NCBI GenBank assembly: GCA_965644295.1 | Contig: CBFFRP010000108.1 | Location: 1 to 64,000 of the forward strand | Reading direction: 5' to 3' | Origin: Paraphysomonas bandaiensis | Lineage: Eukaryota > Protista > Chrysophyceae | Length of the DNA: 64,000 nucleotides | Shown here: positions 4,891-29,768 of the stretch, one piece after another | Layout of the letters: the number at the start of each line of letters is the position of its first letter | How positions within the stretch are numbered: the first letter of the stretch is position 1 | The notes under the pieces: model-generated | The model's database searches: none | Seen by the model: the letters and a program-made list of their open reading frames with translations, nothing else | Told to the model about the DNA's origin: nothing | Translations under genes and position numbers: made by a program

Positions 4891-5380
4891 TTAATCCAAT
4901 AGAAGGTGCGTTATAATTAAAGAGATGTGAATTAATATCAATTCAATGAATGAAATCCCTCCCGCTTATGATCTGATTCAAATTTAAATATTCGCTTCGT
5001 TTAATTACAACTCAAACTACACGAGAATCAGCTCCGATCCAATCAACGCCTATTTACTTATGAAGTGAAGTCAGACTGTGGACTTTGCACACTCTTTAAT
5101 ACTGTTTATGATTTTCAACTTTTGAACTTTTTTGAAGGTCATGAAGAGAGTCAAAAAGTCCGGAAGTCAGATAACATCGTCTCTATTCCAGAGGTTTCTG
5201 CATAAAGCAGGGTTTTACCACTACATTACATTTTTTGTACGGACTGAAAATCAATCACTCCATATGTACGGTACTTAAACACACAGGGAGGTTATTTGCT
5301 TATGCTACAGTCTTCAGCTCTATTAGATACATAGTTTTCTATATCTTGATCATTGACGCATAGCTGTCTTTGGCAAATAA

Positions 5381-22100: not shown

Positions 22101-23550
22101 AAAGAAGACTCCACAGAGAACATACTGGATTGAAGCTACCAGGAAGGAGGTGCACAAGCTTGAACGAAGGACATGCTGGAAGATTGTCCGAAGGCCGAAA
22201 CACCGAAAAAAATCATAAAATCTAAATTGGTCTTTAAAGTAAAGCGCGACCATCTTGGAAAAATTAAGAAGTTCAAAGTTCGACTTGTGGCGAAAGGGTT
22301 TACTCAAGAACAAGGAGTCGACTATAATGAGACATTCTCCCCAGTAGCTAAAGGTGTATCATTTAGGCTAGCACTGGCACTGGCTCTGCGATACAATTTG
22401 CAACTCCGTCAACTCGATGTAGAAACGGCATTTCCGTATGCAGATCTGGACGAAGACGTGTTTATGTCTCCACCTGCAGGAATAGATATTCCACAAGGCT
22501 GTTGTTTGAAGATTCTGAAGAGTTTGTATGGCCTAAAACAAGCGCCTCGAAATTGGCATTCAATGCTGAAGGACAGTATAAAGGCGATGGGGTATAAACA
22601 ATGTGTTCTTGACCCATGTTTATTTGTCCTCAAGGGCACTGATACTAACCTACATATGATACTTGTGTATGTAGATGATATCATTGTGCTCAGCTCTGAC
22701 AGCCGTCATATTGAAGAAGTCATCAGCGCTTTTAAGACTCAATATGCCATGCAAGATATGGGGGATCTTAAGCATTATTTAGGTCTTACCATTGAGCGTC
22801 ATAATGGCCAGATTAAGTTACATCAGTCTGCATATGCTAAAGATGTTGTGGCCAGATTCAATCACTTGTTGTCAGAAAAGAAGAGACGGTGCAAGGCAAC
22901 CACACCTCTACCACCTGGTCTAAAGTTGTCCAAGGATGCAAAAGAGGAAGAAACTCGAAAACAGAGAGAATACGTTGATGCATTTCCCTATCAATCTGTT
23001 ATTGGTGCCTTAATGTATTTGGCAGTGCATACTAGACCAGACATGGCATATACAGTAAATCTTCTCTCCCGGTTCACCACAAGACCCACGTACGCTGCAT
23101 GTCAAGCTGCTCTGCATACTTTATTGTATTTAGAAAATACAGTTGATCAAGGTATCATATTTCCTAATTTCACAGATGAAGACCCTCTATGTGTGTACTC
23201 TGATGCAGATTGGGCCGGAGATCTGGATACATGCAGATCCACTACAGGGTATATCGTATATCTGTGGGGTGCTCCAATCGCATGGCAGTCCAGACTGCAG
23301 CCAACAGTGGCTACGTCGACTATGGAAGCTGAATATATGGCTGCATATGCTGCAATTCAGGAGATTGTATGGATACGAGGGGTGATGACAGAGCTCGGAA
23401 TTCGTGGATTTGAGCTCAGTAAGAATGCGTCTCCAACAATCTTGAATATGGACAGCAAGAGTGCGATTGATCTAGCTCAGAACCCGGTAAATCATAAACG
23501 TTCCAAGCATATTCGGATCAAGTATCATTGGATTCGAGAGCAAGTGGGAG
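19139..23550 (+). mobile_element. Ty1/copia LTR retrotransposon gag-pol; two frameshifts, 3'-truncated, no LTRs seen
   Basis: Copia domain order: gag with two CX2CX4HX4C knuckles, protease YLDSGC, 'LWHKRLGH..CNTC', DDE integrase (SADT/HADGAGE/SERTNR), RT ('RLVAKGFTQ', 'LYGLKQAPRNW', YVDD), RNase H ('YSDADWAGD', 'STMEAEY', 'KHIRIKYHWIREQV'). Frameshifts near 20385 and 22210. Confidence 0.95.
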
Positions 23551-23552
23551 GC

Positions 23553-25470
23553 TGTATCGTCAGGCAGTCACTAGTTAATAATAAGCAAACTGCAGAGATG
23601 CCATATTGTGTTTTGAAGAAAAGTTTTTAAAAAATGGTAAAAACTCCGTGTAACTCAAACTAGCCACCTAGGTCGCTTGTGGCTTGGTAATTGTGATTTG
23701 GGTGTCTCTGAGGTTGTTGATCGCTTTCTGCTGGATGGGATGTTGAACCCAGCTCCCCCCATCAATGTAGTTTGCAATGTGATGAAGTCTGTTGCTCCGA
23801 GTGGTTTTGTAAAAGAAGATTGGCTAATATTGACTTGGTGGGTATATGATAAACAGTCAATAAATTCTCGGTAATATGTTCTCGAATGAAGTGATATCGT
23901 ATCGCGATATGTTTAGTACGGCGATGATGGGTAGGATTGTAACACATTTTAGTATCACACCAAATAGTTGTTGAGAATGGAAGTTTGAAACTAATCTCTC
24001 ATAATAAAGAGCGTAGCTATATAATACTTTCTGAGCTGCTGACGATAAAGCCGTATATTCAGCTTCAGTAGATCGCAATGCCTCGCTGTTGTCTGTAATC
24101 GAGATTGCTATTAGTATGAAAGTCTGATTATTACATGAGTACGGTTGCGTACAGAAACTAGTTTATGTCTATAGACTAGCTAATAACTAGATTTGCTATA
24201 TACTACTAGTGGCGGGCAACCGTCTCGGGACTGCTTGTGCATCGCTGCGAGCACCATGGTGCAACCGTCCCTTGTAGTGAGGTTAGACGGGGGGTCTACC
24301 TTTGGGCAATGTGTCTGGCGGGCCTGTGCCATGGATTATGTGGGGGGCGGGTGAGGCGAGATGTATATGAGAGTGCAAGTCGGTGGTGGAGATGGTGCTG
24401 GTTGTTGAGGTGGGGTTTCGGCTACAAGTAAGAAGAAGTTGTTTCCGGAGTGGTTGCGCTTGCCTCTGTCGGGTCTGGGCTCTTGCAGAGAGTGTAGTTC
24501 GTGGGGTGGATGTCGCCTGGAGTAGCTGGAGTACTTTTGGTGTCGGGTGGGTATCCTGGGGCTGGCGTTGCTTTGCGTGTGTCGGGACCGGTGTCGCCGG
24601 TGCCGTGTCTACGTTGTGGTGTCTGTGTCCCCTATTGTGAAGCATGCGGAGCCCTCCATCATATAGGGGGAGTAGGATAGAGGCGATGGATTTTTCTAAG
24701 GTGTGGAATTGATGTTCGAACAGTGAGCTGGATATGTGGCGTCCGAATGCGTCGGCCATTTGTGTGGCAGTAATGTGGCCGGTCCAGAAGCGCTCAACCT
24801 GGGGGGTGGTTGGGTTCCATGCGGCTTTGATAAAGCCATATATTCAGCTTCAGTAGATCACAATGCCTCGCTGTTGTCTGTAATCGAGATTGCTATGATA
24901 TAAGACATTACCTCTGAAGAATGTAAAAGCTGTAGTGGGCCGTCGAGTGGGGTGACATCGCGCCCAGTTGCTATCGCAGTATTCTGACAGTGTTATGTGG
25001 GATCCAGAATATATCAATCCTTTTGCTTAGCAGTGCGTTTTTGAGGTCTTGCTCTACACGCTAAACTTCACGACATAATATATATTTATGTAATATCTGG
25101 TGAACATCTGTACACAGAATCATCTGTTTATTTATATATGTTCACCAGTCAATATATTATGGTATCTTGTCCAAGACTTTCATTAATGTTGATCTCGAAA
25201 TATATTATATACCTCCACCTGGTGTTCTGTCGTGTCAATGAGTTTTTCCACGAAAGTAATATCACCCACTCCAATCAGTGATACGCATTCCACATACTTT
25301 ACTCTCGACATATTTCTCCATCGCACCACCACCTCGCTGGGCAGCCAAAACTTTATCTGTCCATATCCCTCGTGATTGATAGCATGTTGCGACATGTTGC
25401 TCCTCCCAAAAAGCCTTGTTTTCGTTTCAGAACACTTTGTCTTACAAGGCAATTCCGGAATAGCCAAGCC
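23553..25470 (-). mobile_element. Second, decayed copia RT/RNase H fragment with PPT and possible ~200-bp 3' LTR, interrupted by an insertion
   Basis: Minus strand 'YCDSNWARCHPTRRPTT' (~24990-24935), 'RSTEAEYTALSSAAQ', 'NPTHHRRTKHIAIRYHFIREH'. PPT GATGGGGGGAG near 23753-23763, followed by a TG...CA segment ending near 23553. Confidence 0.75.
24112..24828 (-). mobile_element. 717-bp GC-rich insertion, probable 5'-truncated non-LTR retroelement (ORF end plus 3' UTR), with 68-bp target-site duplication
   Basis: Direct repeats at 24044-24111 and 24829-24896 (2 mismatches). Frame is open from the 5' boundary to a stop at 24283. The 3' UTR motif and the 'agactttcatactaa' tail are shared with the dispersed repeat family. 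Confidence 0.7.
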
Positions 25471-26336
25471 TCTAGTGCAACCTCTTCGTTATTATGTTAT
25501 TATCATTTATTCTATCAAAGAATACTCGTGCAATGACTTCTGGTGCCTGTTTATCGCGGCAATTAATTAAGTCAATTATTATGTATCATAGTCCTATGGA
25601 TATTATAATAGTCTTTCGATTATTCTCGTAAAAGTTAGATTTGAAAAATAGAACATGCCGTTTATATAAACAACATTCAGTGCAAACATTTGGTATTTTT
25701 TATCAATTAATTGAAGCTAGCTGGAGTCGATAATTATAATTGCAATTATGAATTGATGTCCAAATTTCAAATTTCAATTATTGCAATTTCAAAAGTTGGT
25801 AATTAATTGATACGCAGCCCTGCTGGTCATTAATGAGTAACGAGTAACTAAATTTACTTCCTTCGTAACTATGTTTAGCCGTTACAACTACGAGTTGATT
25901 TCACCTCGTGTATACTATATTAACTCACTTCAATTGCAATATAATATCGTATCATACAGCAGAACTCAACTGCAAATTAATTATTACATATTGTTACGAA
26001 AGGGTGTTATATAGTTATTAACGCATTCAACTACGTTCAGTAAGTATCTAGTTTTCATATTTCCTACCAGGAGCATCTGAACATTTACCATGAACGTCCG
26101 TTACCGGTAGTGACATTGCAGTCATATCAACTCATCTAAAATGACTTCTAGATACTTCTCATCCCTTATTACTATCCACTTTACTTTCTCGTTATCCTTA
26201 TATATATTTCAAGAACTCCATAAGCAACCTACTATTGATAATCTTGAATTATACAAGAGCGAAAATCAAACACTTCTTTAAAAATTCAATCCATACCATC
26301 CAAGAAGCGAATACTATCTAACTATATATTCCATGG

Positions 26337-28899
26337 CTACGCCGTTTTTTTACGACGTGGTGTGGACTTCACAACTCGTACAGTACTACCAAGTTCTTCA
26401 CAACAAATTCCACCACTCAGATGTGTTCCTGTGCCCCTCAGTATCGCAGCTGAAACATCTACATGATTCACTGTTTTTGGTATCGACCCACTCCTCGAGT
26501 CTATATAACACAATGACACGAGTTGCAATTGAAATGCGGATACATTCACCTTTCTCAATATCTAGGAGTGGACAACCTTTGCTGGTTCGTGTCGAATTGA
26601 CCAAGGGATCTTTCTGGTCGTATTCACCACCAAGTGTAGAAGCAGGTGTGGAAGAGTCCGCTTCAGTTACTGTTACTTAGACATGCTTTTGCATCACTAT
26701 ATGAATACCTGCAGACATCTGCGCTCCACCTCCATCAATTTTCTGTGTGCGACTCTTCTTCCGCGACTGATGCGGACCAAGTTCGTATTTCTCCGCGACA
26801 GCATTCTTTTTTGACAGCGTAGCAAGATCTTCCCATGACAGCATGCCGCATTCCCTCTCTTTCTCCTGAAACGCATTTACAAATGAGGAGTGCATAACTC
26901 GCCCTCTCCTTTACTCACTTCGCGTTTCCACCAGGGTTCCTTCGTCTCTGATGATGTTCCTGAACTGCCCCTTTTCCGTTGACCTGCTCTGCGCTCTTCA
27001 TCCTGCGCCTCTATTTCAGCTTTAAGTCCTTCCTCCTCGACTAAATACCGTCGTTTCAACTCTTCGGATCGACTAGCGATCTCTCCGTCCAGCTTACAGC
27101 GGAAGTCAGGGCCCCATGCAATGTGCAAAGCACGTCTTCTCTTAAACTCATCCTCTGTAGTTTCGCTAATTCTCTTCTCCAATTCTTTAAAGTGCTCACA
27201 GATGAAATGGTTAGTTCGTTTACGTCGAATCCCCCCGGCAGCATCCACAATACTGGTTATGTGCATTTGAAGACCATCATAAAGCAGCTTCATAGCCTTC
27301 GGGGTAGCGGAAAAGTTACGTGACTTTAAAACATCATTTGCAACATTGTATATGGTGTCCCGCAGATTGTCCGCATTCGTTGTATTCGATGGAGCCGTTC
27401 TCGACAACCCTTGTGTAACATTGGCCGCTACGCCAGGGACAGTCTGGTTGCTAAGGGAGCTTCGTATGCACCCGTCGGCCTCATCCTTCAGATCTGACTC
27501 TCTCACCACCTCAATACTAAGATCATTTCCACCCCCATCACCACCATTTGAAAATACAGTCATATCCACCTTCTCCGTGTCATCGTCCACAGTCGCATTA
27601 GTTCCATCCACAGACTTTGCCGTTCCCACCTTTTTGTTTGTCTGAAAAAGCCATCAGACTTAACAACAAAAGCAGCCATGACATACCTTTTGACCGCGCT
27701 TGCTGGTAGCGGATACATCTTTAGCAACCTGACACAGCAATATAATAACCAAACGATACGTTACCACAATTGCAGGTGATCCCGTCATCTACCTCAGTGT
27801 TCTGTTGAGCACTATACTCAGTTGGCTCTGGTTTCGGTTGTTCGTCACTTTTCTGTGCTCCACGCATCTAATCGGCACAGTTCAGTTTGACCCATGCAAC
27901 ACTTGCAAATCTACTGTTCCCAACAAAACCAGTGATTTCCCACACCTACCTTCATATTTTGTGGAGTAATATGCTGACTGGGTGGTGCTGGATATGGTTG
28001 GCCACGTTGACTTTCGTGCATCTAATCGACACAGTTCAGTTTGACCCATGCAACATGCAAATCTACTGTTCCCAACGAAACCAGTGATTTCCCCCACCTA
28101 CCTGCATAGTCTGGGGAGTAATATGCGAGTTGAGTACTGCTGTATATGGTTGACCTCGTTGACTTTCCTGCATCTAATCGACACAGTTCAGTACACTAGT
28201 AAACAACATGCAAATCTATTGTTCCCAACGAAACCAGTGATTCCCCACCTACCTGCACATTCTGAGGAGTAATATGCTGATTGGGTACTGCTGGATATGG
28301 TTGGCCCCTTTGCATTTCCTGCATCTAATCGACACAGCTCAGTTTGACCCATGCAACACTTGCAAATCTACTGTTCACAGCGAAACCAGTGATTTCCCAC
28401 ACCTACCTGCATATTCTGGGGAGTAATATGCTGACTGGGTGGTGCTGTGTATGGTTGGCCTCTTTGACTTTCCTGCATCTAATCGACACAGTTCAGTTTG
28501 ACCCATGCAACAAGCAAATCTACTGTTCCCAACAAAACCAGTGATTTCCCACACCTACCTGCATATTTTGGGGAGTAATATGCTGACTGGGCACTGCTGG
28601 ATATGGTTGGCCTCTTTGCATTTTCGGCATCTAATCGACACAGTTCAGTTTGACCCATGCAACACTTGCAAATCTACTGTTCCCAACAAAACCAGTGATT
28701 TCCCCCACCTACCTGCATATTCTGGGGAGTAATATGCTGACTGGGTGGTGCTGGATATGGTTGGCCTCGTTGACTTTCCTGCATCTAATCGACACAGTTC
28801 AGTACATTAATAAACAACATGCAAATCTACTGTTTGAACAAGACCAGTAGTTTCCCCACCTACCTGCACATTCTGGGGAGCTCTCTGCTGAGCTTCCAT
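26337..28899 (-). CDS. TAF4: TFIID subunit TAF4-like protein; N-terminus encoded by tandemly repeated exons
   Basis: ATG 28899 and phase-0 exons splice in frame into ORF 26877-27629. Histone-fold-like 'DTIYNVANDVLKSRNFSATPKAMKLLYDGLQMHITSIVDAAGGIRRKRT' and C-terminal 'PKTVNHVDVSAAIL', which resembles the TAF4 CCTD. Stop at 26337. Confidence 0.6.
27868..28879 (-). repeat. Tandem array of ~151-154-bp exon+intron units (7 introns, 6 full exons)
   Basis: 72-nt exons at 28713-28784, 28559-28630, 28407-28478, 28253-28324, 28102-28173 and 27950-28021. Introns of 79-82 nt all begin GTAGGTG and end GATTAG. Confidence 0.95.
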
Positions 28900-29768
28900 T
28901 TTGGCGGCCCTCGTCTTTTCCAAAACCTACTCAACACTGTTCAGAATGGTCATCCGCTATTTACAAACATACAGCTCTGATTAATTCTTTCCCTCTTTCT
29001 TTTCCATATTTTTTAATCGTCTCAGTATAAAAGTAGCTACGTGTATCACTTATCAATCCGCGCTCAAGCAGTTTCTAAATCATCATCATCAGGCATGTGG
29101 CGGGAACAAGATACAACGAACAAACCCGTGCATTGCGCATTATTTCATACACTTCCCTGATCTGTATATCATTTCCAACTGCAGAAATACATAACTACAG
29201 TGCAGTGTTATAAGCTATCGATTCAACGCACCGGGAGGTGTACTTTTGACCGCGCCAGGAGCGTCACCGGCATTCATCGTCTATATAGACGGGATTAATC
29301 CACAAGAGTATAACACTAGCAGCTGTATGATACCTGAAATAGATAGATGGATACCTGGGTTGCAGACGGTAGATGTGCGTTCCCCACTGGTTGCTATATG
29401 ACTCGTTAGTCCTCCTGCTGTTGGTTGTGTTTGCTATTCGGCTAGTTACTGTGCTACACTGCGGCGCGATACTCTGATGCTGTAGTTCCAGTTGGTACCC
29501 ATTTCTTCATACAGGTACAGTGCATAAGTACAGTACACAAGTACAGTGTATTACAGCAAGAAGTAGACGGTATACTCCTGTATACAGCAGTGTGTGTCCA
29601 TCCAGCACTGTTGCAAATATTCAGCTCATGGAAGAAGGTAGCATTCAAGCAAGTGGCGCCTGTGATTGTGGGCCTGAGCAATGCCCATGCGTACAATAAT
29701 TCAGCATCAATAGCCCTTGTTTGTGCGTTGACTGGAATCAGGAGCAAGGCCAGTTAGAAACGTGTCAG

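Follow-up and report, generated by a model that had tools for sequence, protein, structure and literature searches.

A tandem array of short exons and their introns encoding the glutamine- and proline-rich middle of a probable TAF4-family protein in Paraphysomonas bandaiensis

Contig CBFFRP010000108.1 of Paraphysomonas bandaiensis, a marine unicellular stramenopile alga, carries a tandem repeat with a period of 152 nucleotides (nt) (27864-28880, 6.7 copies, 86% matches, score 1445 in the tandem-repeat finder TRF) that has the appearance of satellite DNA. The locus raises the question of whether this repeat is coding, and if so, in which protein and by what route it arose. All coordinates are those of the window, the whole 64,000-nt stretch of the contig that was analysed. 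An earlier sequence-only reading had taken the repeat, on the minus strand, for a chain of short exons and near-identical introns that forms the N-terminus of TAF4, a core subunit of TFIID. It appears very probable that the stretch is the middle of a minus-strand protein-coding gene with a TAF4-family product, in which tandemly arrayed exon+intron units encode a glutamine- and proline-rich (Q/P-rich) segment. The array is transcribed, spliced, and contained in a single open frame.

When the borders are traced from the ATG that the sequence-only reading had proposed, with GTAGGTG as the donor and GATTAG as the acceptor, the minus strand from 28784 to 27950 resolves into six exons of exactly 72 nt each, here called cassettes, which are separated and flanked by seven introns. 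The cassettes lie where they had been predicted and translate exactly into the six 24-residue peptides listed for them. All seven introns run from GTAGGTG to GATTAG in phase 0 and measure 79, 82, 80, 82, 79, 80, and 82 nt, and the length variation of the array is confined to them, as had been claimed, the six cassette exons being constant. The exon+intron unit (151-154 nt) is in no case divisible by 3, indicating that the frame is kept by splicing alone, and in-frame stops are present in each array intron. These introns are longer than the other introns of the gene (45-64 nt) and share an internal GTAGAT at position 36; a search of Rfam over 27600-29100 gave no family match, and the conserved introns thus show no sign of a small nucleolar RNA or another known RNA. 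The segment encoded by the cassettes comprises 144 residues (22% Q, 17% P) with the 24-residue repeat consensus MxxxQRGQPYxAxxxxHITPQxxx, and cassettes 1 and 3 have their last 30 nt in common without a difference. Related sequence extends into the exons on both sides. Over its last 28 nt, coding exon 4 shows homology to the 3' end of the cassettes (alignment, shuffle p = 0 of 500), and the 75-nt coding exon 11 (27867-27793), which had already been described as diverged, can be aligned with gaps to cassette 1 at a score that was reached by 0 of 2000 shuffles. Judged by these alignments, the tail of exon 4 is the worn left edge of the array and exon 11 is a diverged cassette at its right edge.

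That the exons contain no stops, as the sequence-only reading had stressed, is true but is a weak argument, as nearly all frames of the 72-nt segments are open; the RNA junctions are decisive. The RNA evidence consists of Logan contigs of public runs that were mapped to 26100-29450, namely X1, X3, and X4, which come from three different studies and of which X3 is a polyA RNA-seq metatranscriptome, together with a DNA run, X15. The joints 27867/27950, 28021/28102, 28478/28559, and 28630/28713 are each found in X1, X3, and X4, making four of the seven array junctions unambiguous, and all introns of the gene outside the array are likewise carried as joints by contigs of these three runs. The DNA run is collinear with the genome and has zero joints. 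Among 5.8 billion proteins, the large open reading frame (ORF) downstream of the array (26877-27629) has one relative that is 100% identical, P0001, which sits on L001, a 2352-nt contig of the Joint Genome Institute (JGI). L001 is a transcript contig without the introns of the array, and its exon junctions fall exactly at the predicted borders, as in ...cagaatgtgcag|atgcaggaaag....

Several features of the RNA record weigh against so simple a picture. The junctions 28784/28864, 28173/28253, and 28324/28407 rest on L001, on loose ends of 8-10 letters (28786, 28175), or on an ambiguous joint. As the RNA data are assembled contigs, the spliced form is visible in them, but not levels, isoform ratios, or rare skipping. 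Moreover, L001 keeps the 64-nt intron that follows the array (L001:918-981), and this leads to a stop codon that would cut the protein short after the array. The public gene call, P0001, begins at an ATG within this retained intron. Splicing looks constitutive in the available data. As a separate observation, retention of the 64-nt intron would leave the N-terminal domain and the Q/P repeats without a histone fold.

Each RNA joint was refined to GT..AG, and the phase arithmetic was done exon by exon. The resulting model has 16 coding exons with 1968 nt and 655 codons (655 amino acids, aa) in one frame, with no stop between 29277 and 26337, and the gene is single-copy in the 62.6-Mb genome assembly. 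Its features are listed below in the order of transcription, together with the evidence for each, where UTR stands for untranslated region and sequence walk for the tracing of borders described above.

29334-29425, minus strand: 5'UTR exon without ATG; L001 1-82 maps here, the X1 contig reaches 29425, and the joint 29280/29334 is in X1, X3, and X4
29232-29280, minus strand: coding exon 1, start codon 29277-29275 (MNAGDAP...); L001, RNA contigs, and model
29126-29178, minus strand: coding exon 2, part of the N-terminal helical domain; RNA contigs with joints 29178/29232 and 29074/29126
28973-29074, minus strand: coding exon 3, also part of the N-terminal helical domain, carrying the ...KKYGKERGKEL... 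motif common to the homologues; RNA contigs, homologues, and domain model
28864-28926, minus strand: coding exon 4, 63 nt, the last 28 nt cassette-homologous; joint 28924/28971 and L001
28785-28863, minus strand: array intron 1, 79 nt, phase 0; removed in L001 at 349/350, loose ends at 28786 in X1, X3, and X4
28713-28784, minus strand: cassette exon 1, 72 nt; sequence walk, L001, and RNA contigs
28631-28712, minus strand: array intron 2, 82 nt; joint 28630/28713 in X1, X3, and X4, and not in the DNA run X15
28559-28630, minus strand: cassette exon 2, 72 nt; sequence walk and RNA contigs
28479-28558, minus strand: array intron 3, 80 nt; joint 28478/28559 in X1, X3, and X4
28407-28478, minus strand: cassette exon 3, 72 nt; sequence walk and RNA contigs
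28325-28406, minus strand: array intron 4, 82 nt; junction sequence in X1 and X3, but placed at 28324/28713 (ambiguous)
28253-28324, minus strand: cassette exon 4, 72 nt; L001 625-698 is 100% identical, contigs in X3 and X4
28174-28252, minus strand: array intron 5, 79 nt, of a variant type also seen in intron 1; removed in L001 at 698/699, and X1 has a loose end at 28175
28102-28173, minus strand: cassette exon 5, 72 nt; sequence walk, L001, and RNA contigs
28022-28101, minus strand: array intron 6, 80 nt; joint 28021/28102 in X1, X3, and X4
27950-28021, minus strand: cassette exon 6, 72 nt; sequence walk, L001, and RNA contigs
27868-27949, minus strand: array intron 7, 82 nt; joint 27867/27950 in X1, X3, and X4
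27793-27867, minus strand: coding exon 11, 75 nt, apparent diverged cassette; alignment to cassette 1 and RNA contigs
27729-27792, minus strand: 64-nt phase-0 intron linking the array to the remainder of the gene; joint 27726/27791 in X1, X3, and X4, retained in L001
27687-27728, minus strand: coding exon 12, 42 nt; L001 and RNA contigs
26919-27641, minus strand: coding exon 13, 723 nt, with an acidic linker, alpha1-alpha2 of the predicted histone fold, a charged helical region, and a WW motif; ORF, homologues, and structure model
26709-26865, minus strand: coding exon 14; joints in RNA contigs and P0001
26550-26660, minus strand: coding exon 15; RNA contigs
26337-26500, minus strand: coding exon 16, with the distal helix predicted to complete the histone fold, stop at 26339-26337, and 3'UTR to about 26104; RNA contigs, P0001, and structure model

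The assembled transcripts do not start downstream of the array or avoid its junctions. The transcript begins near 29415-29425, on the far side of the array from the large ORF, the junctions are used, and the first ATG, after a 5'UTR that has none, is at 29277. The sequence-only reading was mistaken about the start of the gene, as its ATG exon 1 (28864-28899) is the last 36 nt of coding exon 4 and the ATG at 28899 encodes an internal methionine. Upstream of exon 4 lie the 5'UTR exon and three coding exons, which encode about 75 residues that are modelled as a confident three-helix unit (predicted local distance difference test, pLDDT, 77). Because this helical domain precedes it, the array sits in the middle of the protein and does not form its N-terminus. 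For the N-terminal domain, an RST or TAFH identity was considered and is unsupported, the fold matches being generic helices with no known match. On the other side, the array continues in frame into the large ORF after removal of the 64-nt and 45-nt introns, so that the earlier claim that the chain splices in frame into the histone-fold ORF is upheld by the RNA joints and the phase arithmetic. In the 3'UTR, an extra 54-nt GT..AG joint (26243-26296, minus strand) occurs in run X1 only, and is possibly an alternative 3'UTR intron.

The product would have three parts, beginning with a short and conserved helical domain, continuing with a disordered Q/P-rich segment, and ending in a C-terminal split histone fold for which TAF12 is the predicted partner. 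It likely belongs to the TAF4 family, and we infer that it is a subunit of TFIID. An exhaustive HMMER search recovered 43 homologues, of which the two that bear names are from the chrysophytes Epipyxis and Chlorochromonas. As in this protein, the architecture of the homologues comprises an N-terminal motif, an irregular Q/P/N-rich middle, and a C-terminal domain. PF05236 (TAF4) is matched by 11 of 31 homologues (E up to 0.01) and no other family is matched, two of the alignments covering profile positions 39-245 of 262. When Atlas language-model features are compared, the TAF4 cluster comes out on top at 0.93 with 208 shared features, and 21 of the 30 matches are TAF4. The histone fold of TAF4 is split, its third helix being supplied by a distant conserved C-terminal segment. 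The AlphaFold (AF2) model derived from the family alignment (pLDDT 71) has helices at model residues 22-42, 49-77, and 278-311. Its structural neighbours are nearly all histone-fold chains that align over about residues 20-295, with Z of 6-8.1, as is common for helical models, and the weak rows (E above 2) returned by Foldseek for the C-terminal model are also nearly all histone folds. The genome contains a TAF12 candidate, its one PF03847 match above the cut-off (31 bits), and the predicted complex of the two proteins scores 0.61, as compared to 0.00 for the best control, and passes a mark attained by 51 of 78 solved complexes and by 2 of 108 mismatched pairs. The runs of this prediction agree in at least 57% of contacts, the partner has a pLDDT of at least 66, and the predicted interface is formed by residues 27-74 and the distant residues 274-285.

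This assignment has to be weighed against a number of less favourable results. No meaningful match came from Pfam searches, even at E 10, whether the query was the large ORF, one of the downstream ORFs, P0001, or the N-terminal part, and PDB sequence searches with the ORF, the family profile A1, and the N-terminal profile A2 gave nothing usable, with L001 and P0001 standing in for the spliced protein. All four homologues that were checked individually fall below the 33-bit gathering score of PF05236, the best reaching 30.1 bits (E 5e-7). The TAF10 gene of the same genome (C285, L006:1414-1764, 116 aa, PF03540 E 8e-21) also scores 26.4 bits on PF05236, indicating that the sub-threshold PF05236 signal is partly that of a generic histone fold. 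A structural Z of 6-8 is middling for helical proteins. Finally, the predictor may have passed the complex because it had memorised solved pairs of TAF4-TAF12 or ADA1-TAF12, and the pass would fit ADA1 as well as TAF4. The family likeness proposed by the sequence-only reading is therefore supported by the homologues, the features, and the predicted TAF12 complex, but not by a Pfam match of the protein itself. The best PF05236 match of the genome was considered as a second TAF4 and rejected, as it is the TAF10 gene.

The array would be no less real on the unlikely reading that the gene encodes a different histone-fold protein, whether a TAF12 partner such as the SAGA subunit ADA1/TADA1 or a lineage-specific protein. 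This reading takes up the missing PF05236 match of the query and the sub-threshold match of TAF10. ADA1 pairs with TAF12 too, HFI1/ADA1 (E 0.33) is the sole transcription-related row in the PDB profile search, and the SAGA-Tad1 cluster is among the Atlas matches, at rank 26 with a score of 0.76. That the protein is ADA1-like is nevertheless improbable. No family member matches PF12767 (SAGA-Tad1), whereas the matches to PF05236 include some over the C-terminal part of the model, and TAF4 clusters dominate the feature search. In the model, the third helix of the predicted histone fold comes from about 200 residues downstream, as described for TAF4, and a Q-rich region in front of a C-terminal histone fold is the TAF4 layout. 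A search of the genome assembly for other TAF4 candidates found none better, and a scan of the same genome with PF12767 gave no match, but carries no information, as the control genomes gave none either. The TAF12 candidate itself (C200:49999-53178; exon L009:1507-1695, minus strand) is interrupted by a short intron with a GTAGGT start, a branch-like ACTGAG site, and a final TAG, splice signals that resemble those of the array introns.

How a TAF4-family gene would have acquired such a segment can be approached from the array itself. A 378-nt query of 2.5 units has its sole match in the 62.6-Mb genome at this locus, and a unit without another copy in the genome speaks for local expansion and not for a dispersed introner. 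Introner-like, transposon-borne introns are ruled out on the same grounds, there being no dispersed copies in unrelated genes. The alignment of the units supports the view that tandem duplication of exon+intron units produced the seven near-identical introns as copies of one another. The array comprises six well-kept 72-nt phase-0 exons, each with its 79-82-nt intron, and is bordered on either side by a worn copy (exons 4 and 11). It probably grew as a unit of about 152 bp was duplicated in tandem, each copy bringing a donor, a branch region, and an acceptor of its own. This growth could be driven by unequal recombination or by slippage in replication, and the inner units would have been homogenised afterwards; an array that is worn at both edges and well kept inside is the usual picture of growth and homogenisation by unequal exchange. 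As each exon has 24 codons and phase-0 introns on both sides, each added unit inserts one 24-residue repeat and leaves the frame intact.

The units have not diverged evenly. Introns 2, 3, 4, 6, and 7 differ by a minimum of 7 substitutions over 82 columns, as compared to 22 over 72 for the exons copied with them (Fisher p = 7e-4). This greater uniformity of the introns may be due to conversion, to constraint acting on the splice signals of such short introns, or to a peptide that has diversified. Introns 1 and 5 have a distinct 3' half in common, which, on alignment, is a sign of higher-order duplication. Both flanking short introns weakly resemble the 3' half of the cassette intron (p = 0.01 and 0.03), and the last 47 nt of the cassette intron align with the entire 46-nt intron upstream of exon 4 (p = 0.01). 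Among the cassettes, the pooled synonymous divergence is 0.25, and a pooled ratio of non-synonymous to synonymous divergence (pN/pS) of about 0.45, taken over non-independent pairs, tells against anything beyond moderate selection on the repeat peptide. Derivation of an intron from exon sequence, as in Rogers' model, was considered and rejected, as the array intron has no similarity to the exon. Intron multiplication by tandem duplication, which the sequence-only reading had put forward, thus holds in the sense that whole introns were copied, but not in the strict sense of intron gain from exon sequence.

The three-part architecture is common among the homologues, whereas the closest homologue with genomic DNA (L017, 36% identity) encodes its polyglutamine by a (CAA)n tract and lacks a cassette array, indicating that the Q-rich region is ancestral in kind and that its encoding by cassettes is lineage-specific. 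Upstream of the TAF4-like ORF of L017 lie a (CAA)18 polyglutamine tract and a Q/P/H/G-rich ORF (L017:5735-5790 and 5047-5367), as well as a short ORF with the N-terminal motif of the family, an architecture like that found here. The array peptide (L001:471-917) had no match in the 82-260-aa band of the 5.8-billion-sequence protein set. The DNA pattern of the cassettes gave 0 matches in JGI metagenome contigs, which says little, as that set may lack records near this genome.

The Q-rich regions of animal TAF4 contact activators. By analogy with these, the Q/P-rich segment may serve as a flexible or disordered linker or as an interaction region, and the sequence-only reading had gone further, proposing a module of variable length. 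In a fuller version of this idea, repeat number would vary between transcripts by exon skipping or between strains by unequal crossover and would thereby alter contacts with activators or the behaviour of condensates, and the near-identity of the introns would be kept because such tiny exons depend on it for their accurate definition. With all cassettes 72 nt long and in phase 0-0, the frame would survive any skip or change in copy number, and the joint 28324/28713 in X1 and X3, taken at face value, leaves out 388 nt with cassettes 2 and 3. The short side of this joint is 26 letters, however, and given the identical tails of cassettes 1 and 3, it fits the ordinary cassette 3-to-4 junction equally well. 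Exon skipping was rejected on account of this ambiguous placement, the cassette 3-to-4 junction being otherwise missing from the list of joints. Rare isoforms would be invisible in contigs, which bears on the question either way.

A difference in copy number might also be read from L001, which comes from another strain and has a different cassette order and cassette variants. Several non-synonymous strain differences lie inside the array, as compared to just three differences in the 1.5 kb downstream (27350 A>G, 26469 C>G, and a 1-nt deletion at 26280). The altered order is found beyond a 100-N scaffold gap inside the array (L001:371-470), and the odd cassette in L001 combines the head of cassette 6 with the tail of cassette 1/3, joined across a long stretch that cassettes 1 and 6 have in common. 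This is the pattern of a short-read assembly loop across the scaffold gap, which is the probable explanation, and a real allele with a different copy number was rejected. The gap also separates the JGI gene calls on the array part of L001 (86-394 and 464-865), of which the latter is in another frame. The tuning of length by skipping or unequal crossover thus finds no support in these data, the only skipping joint being ambiguous, and a tunable module appears quite unlikely.

That the array is a non-coding satellite in an intron or UTR, with exons that are a chance reading, is scarcely credible: open frames prove little in segments of this kind, gene callers read the array in other frames, and the repeat peptide lacks a match within the length band that was searched, but the RNA contigs of three studies and L001 keep the 72-nt segments and drop the 79-82-nt ones while the DNA run does not, the retained segments link the upstream ATG to the downstream domain in one frame, and exon length is invariant where intron length varies.

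Arrays with one repeat per exon, formed by exon+intron duplication, are already known, and the array in this TAF4-like gene is a well-supported further example. It resembles the spider flagelliform silk gene Flag and MaSp2 of Argiope, which likewise have iterated exon-intron pairs in one gene with symmetric, frame-neutral exons. According to PMC3563967, citing Hayashi and Lewis 2000, the introns of Flag and MaSp2 are more uniform than the exons, and the near-identical introns found here, with 7 against 22 substitutions, are in line with this. It differs from the silk genes in that the exons are tiny, with 24 codons, the array is short, with 6-8 units, the host is a unicellular stramenopile, and the gene is that of a probable general transcription factor and not of a structural protein. 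In intron gain by tandem genomic duplication (Rogers' model), a duplicated exonic AGGT turns exon into intron, as in Drosophila (PMC2891723) and in the potato gene for the RNA-dependent RNA polymerase (RdRp) (PMC4974935). There too, new introns are a by-product of tandem duplication inside a gene, whereas here an existing intron was copied whole with its exon.

As compared to TAF4 as defined by PF05236, the protein shares a Q-rich low-complexity region that is followed by a predicted C-terminal histone fold, modelled with a distant third helix, and a predicted pairing with TAF12. It differs in that the protein itself has no PF05236 match, no TAFH or RST domain is detectable, and the Q/P-rich part is a regular 24-residue repeat and not an irregular Q-rich tract. 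A non-exhaustive literature search found no report of a TAF4-family protein that is built by a cassette array.

The locus illustrates that satellite-like DNA can be coding sequence that is missed by every ORF- or frame-based caller, and the annotation of what is probably a central transcription factor is corrected to 655 aa, 16 coding exons, and three domains. It offers a small natural system in which to study how short exons that have identical splice sites get defined in order, and it indicates how a low-complexity domain can be lengthened by 24 residues at a time. It is also a case of introns that stay more alike than the exons copied alongside them.

Elsewhere in the window, a 485-aa ORF on the plus strand (22173-23630) contains a strong Ty1/copia reverse transcriptase domain (PF07727, E 1.5e-55), and it is adjoined on the minus strand by broken retroelement-like ORFs (23762-24078).

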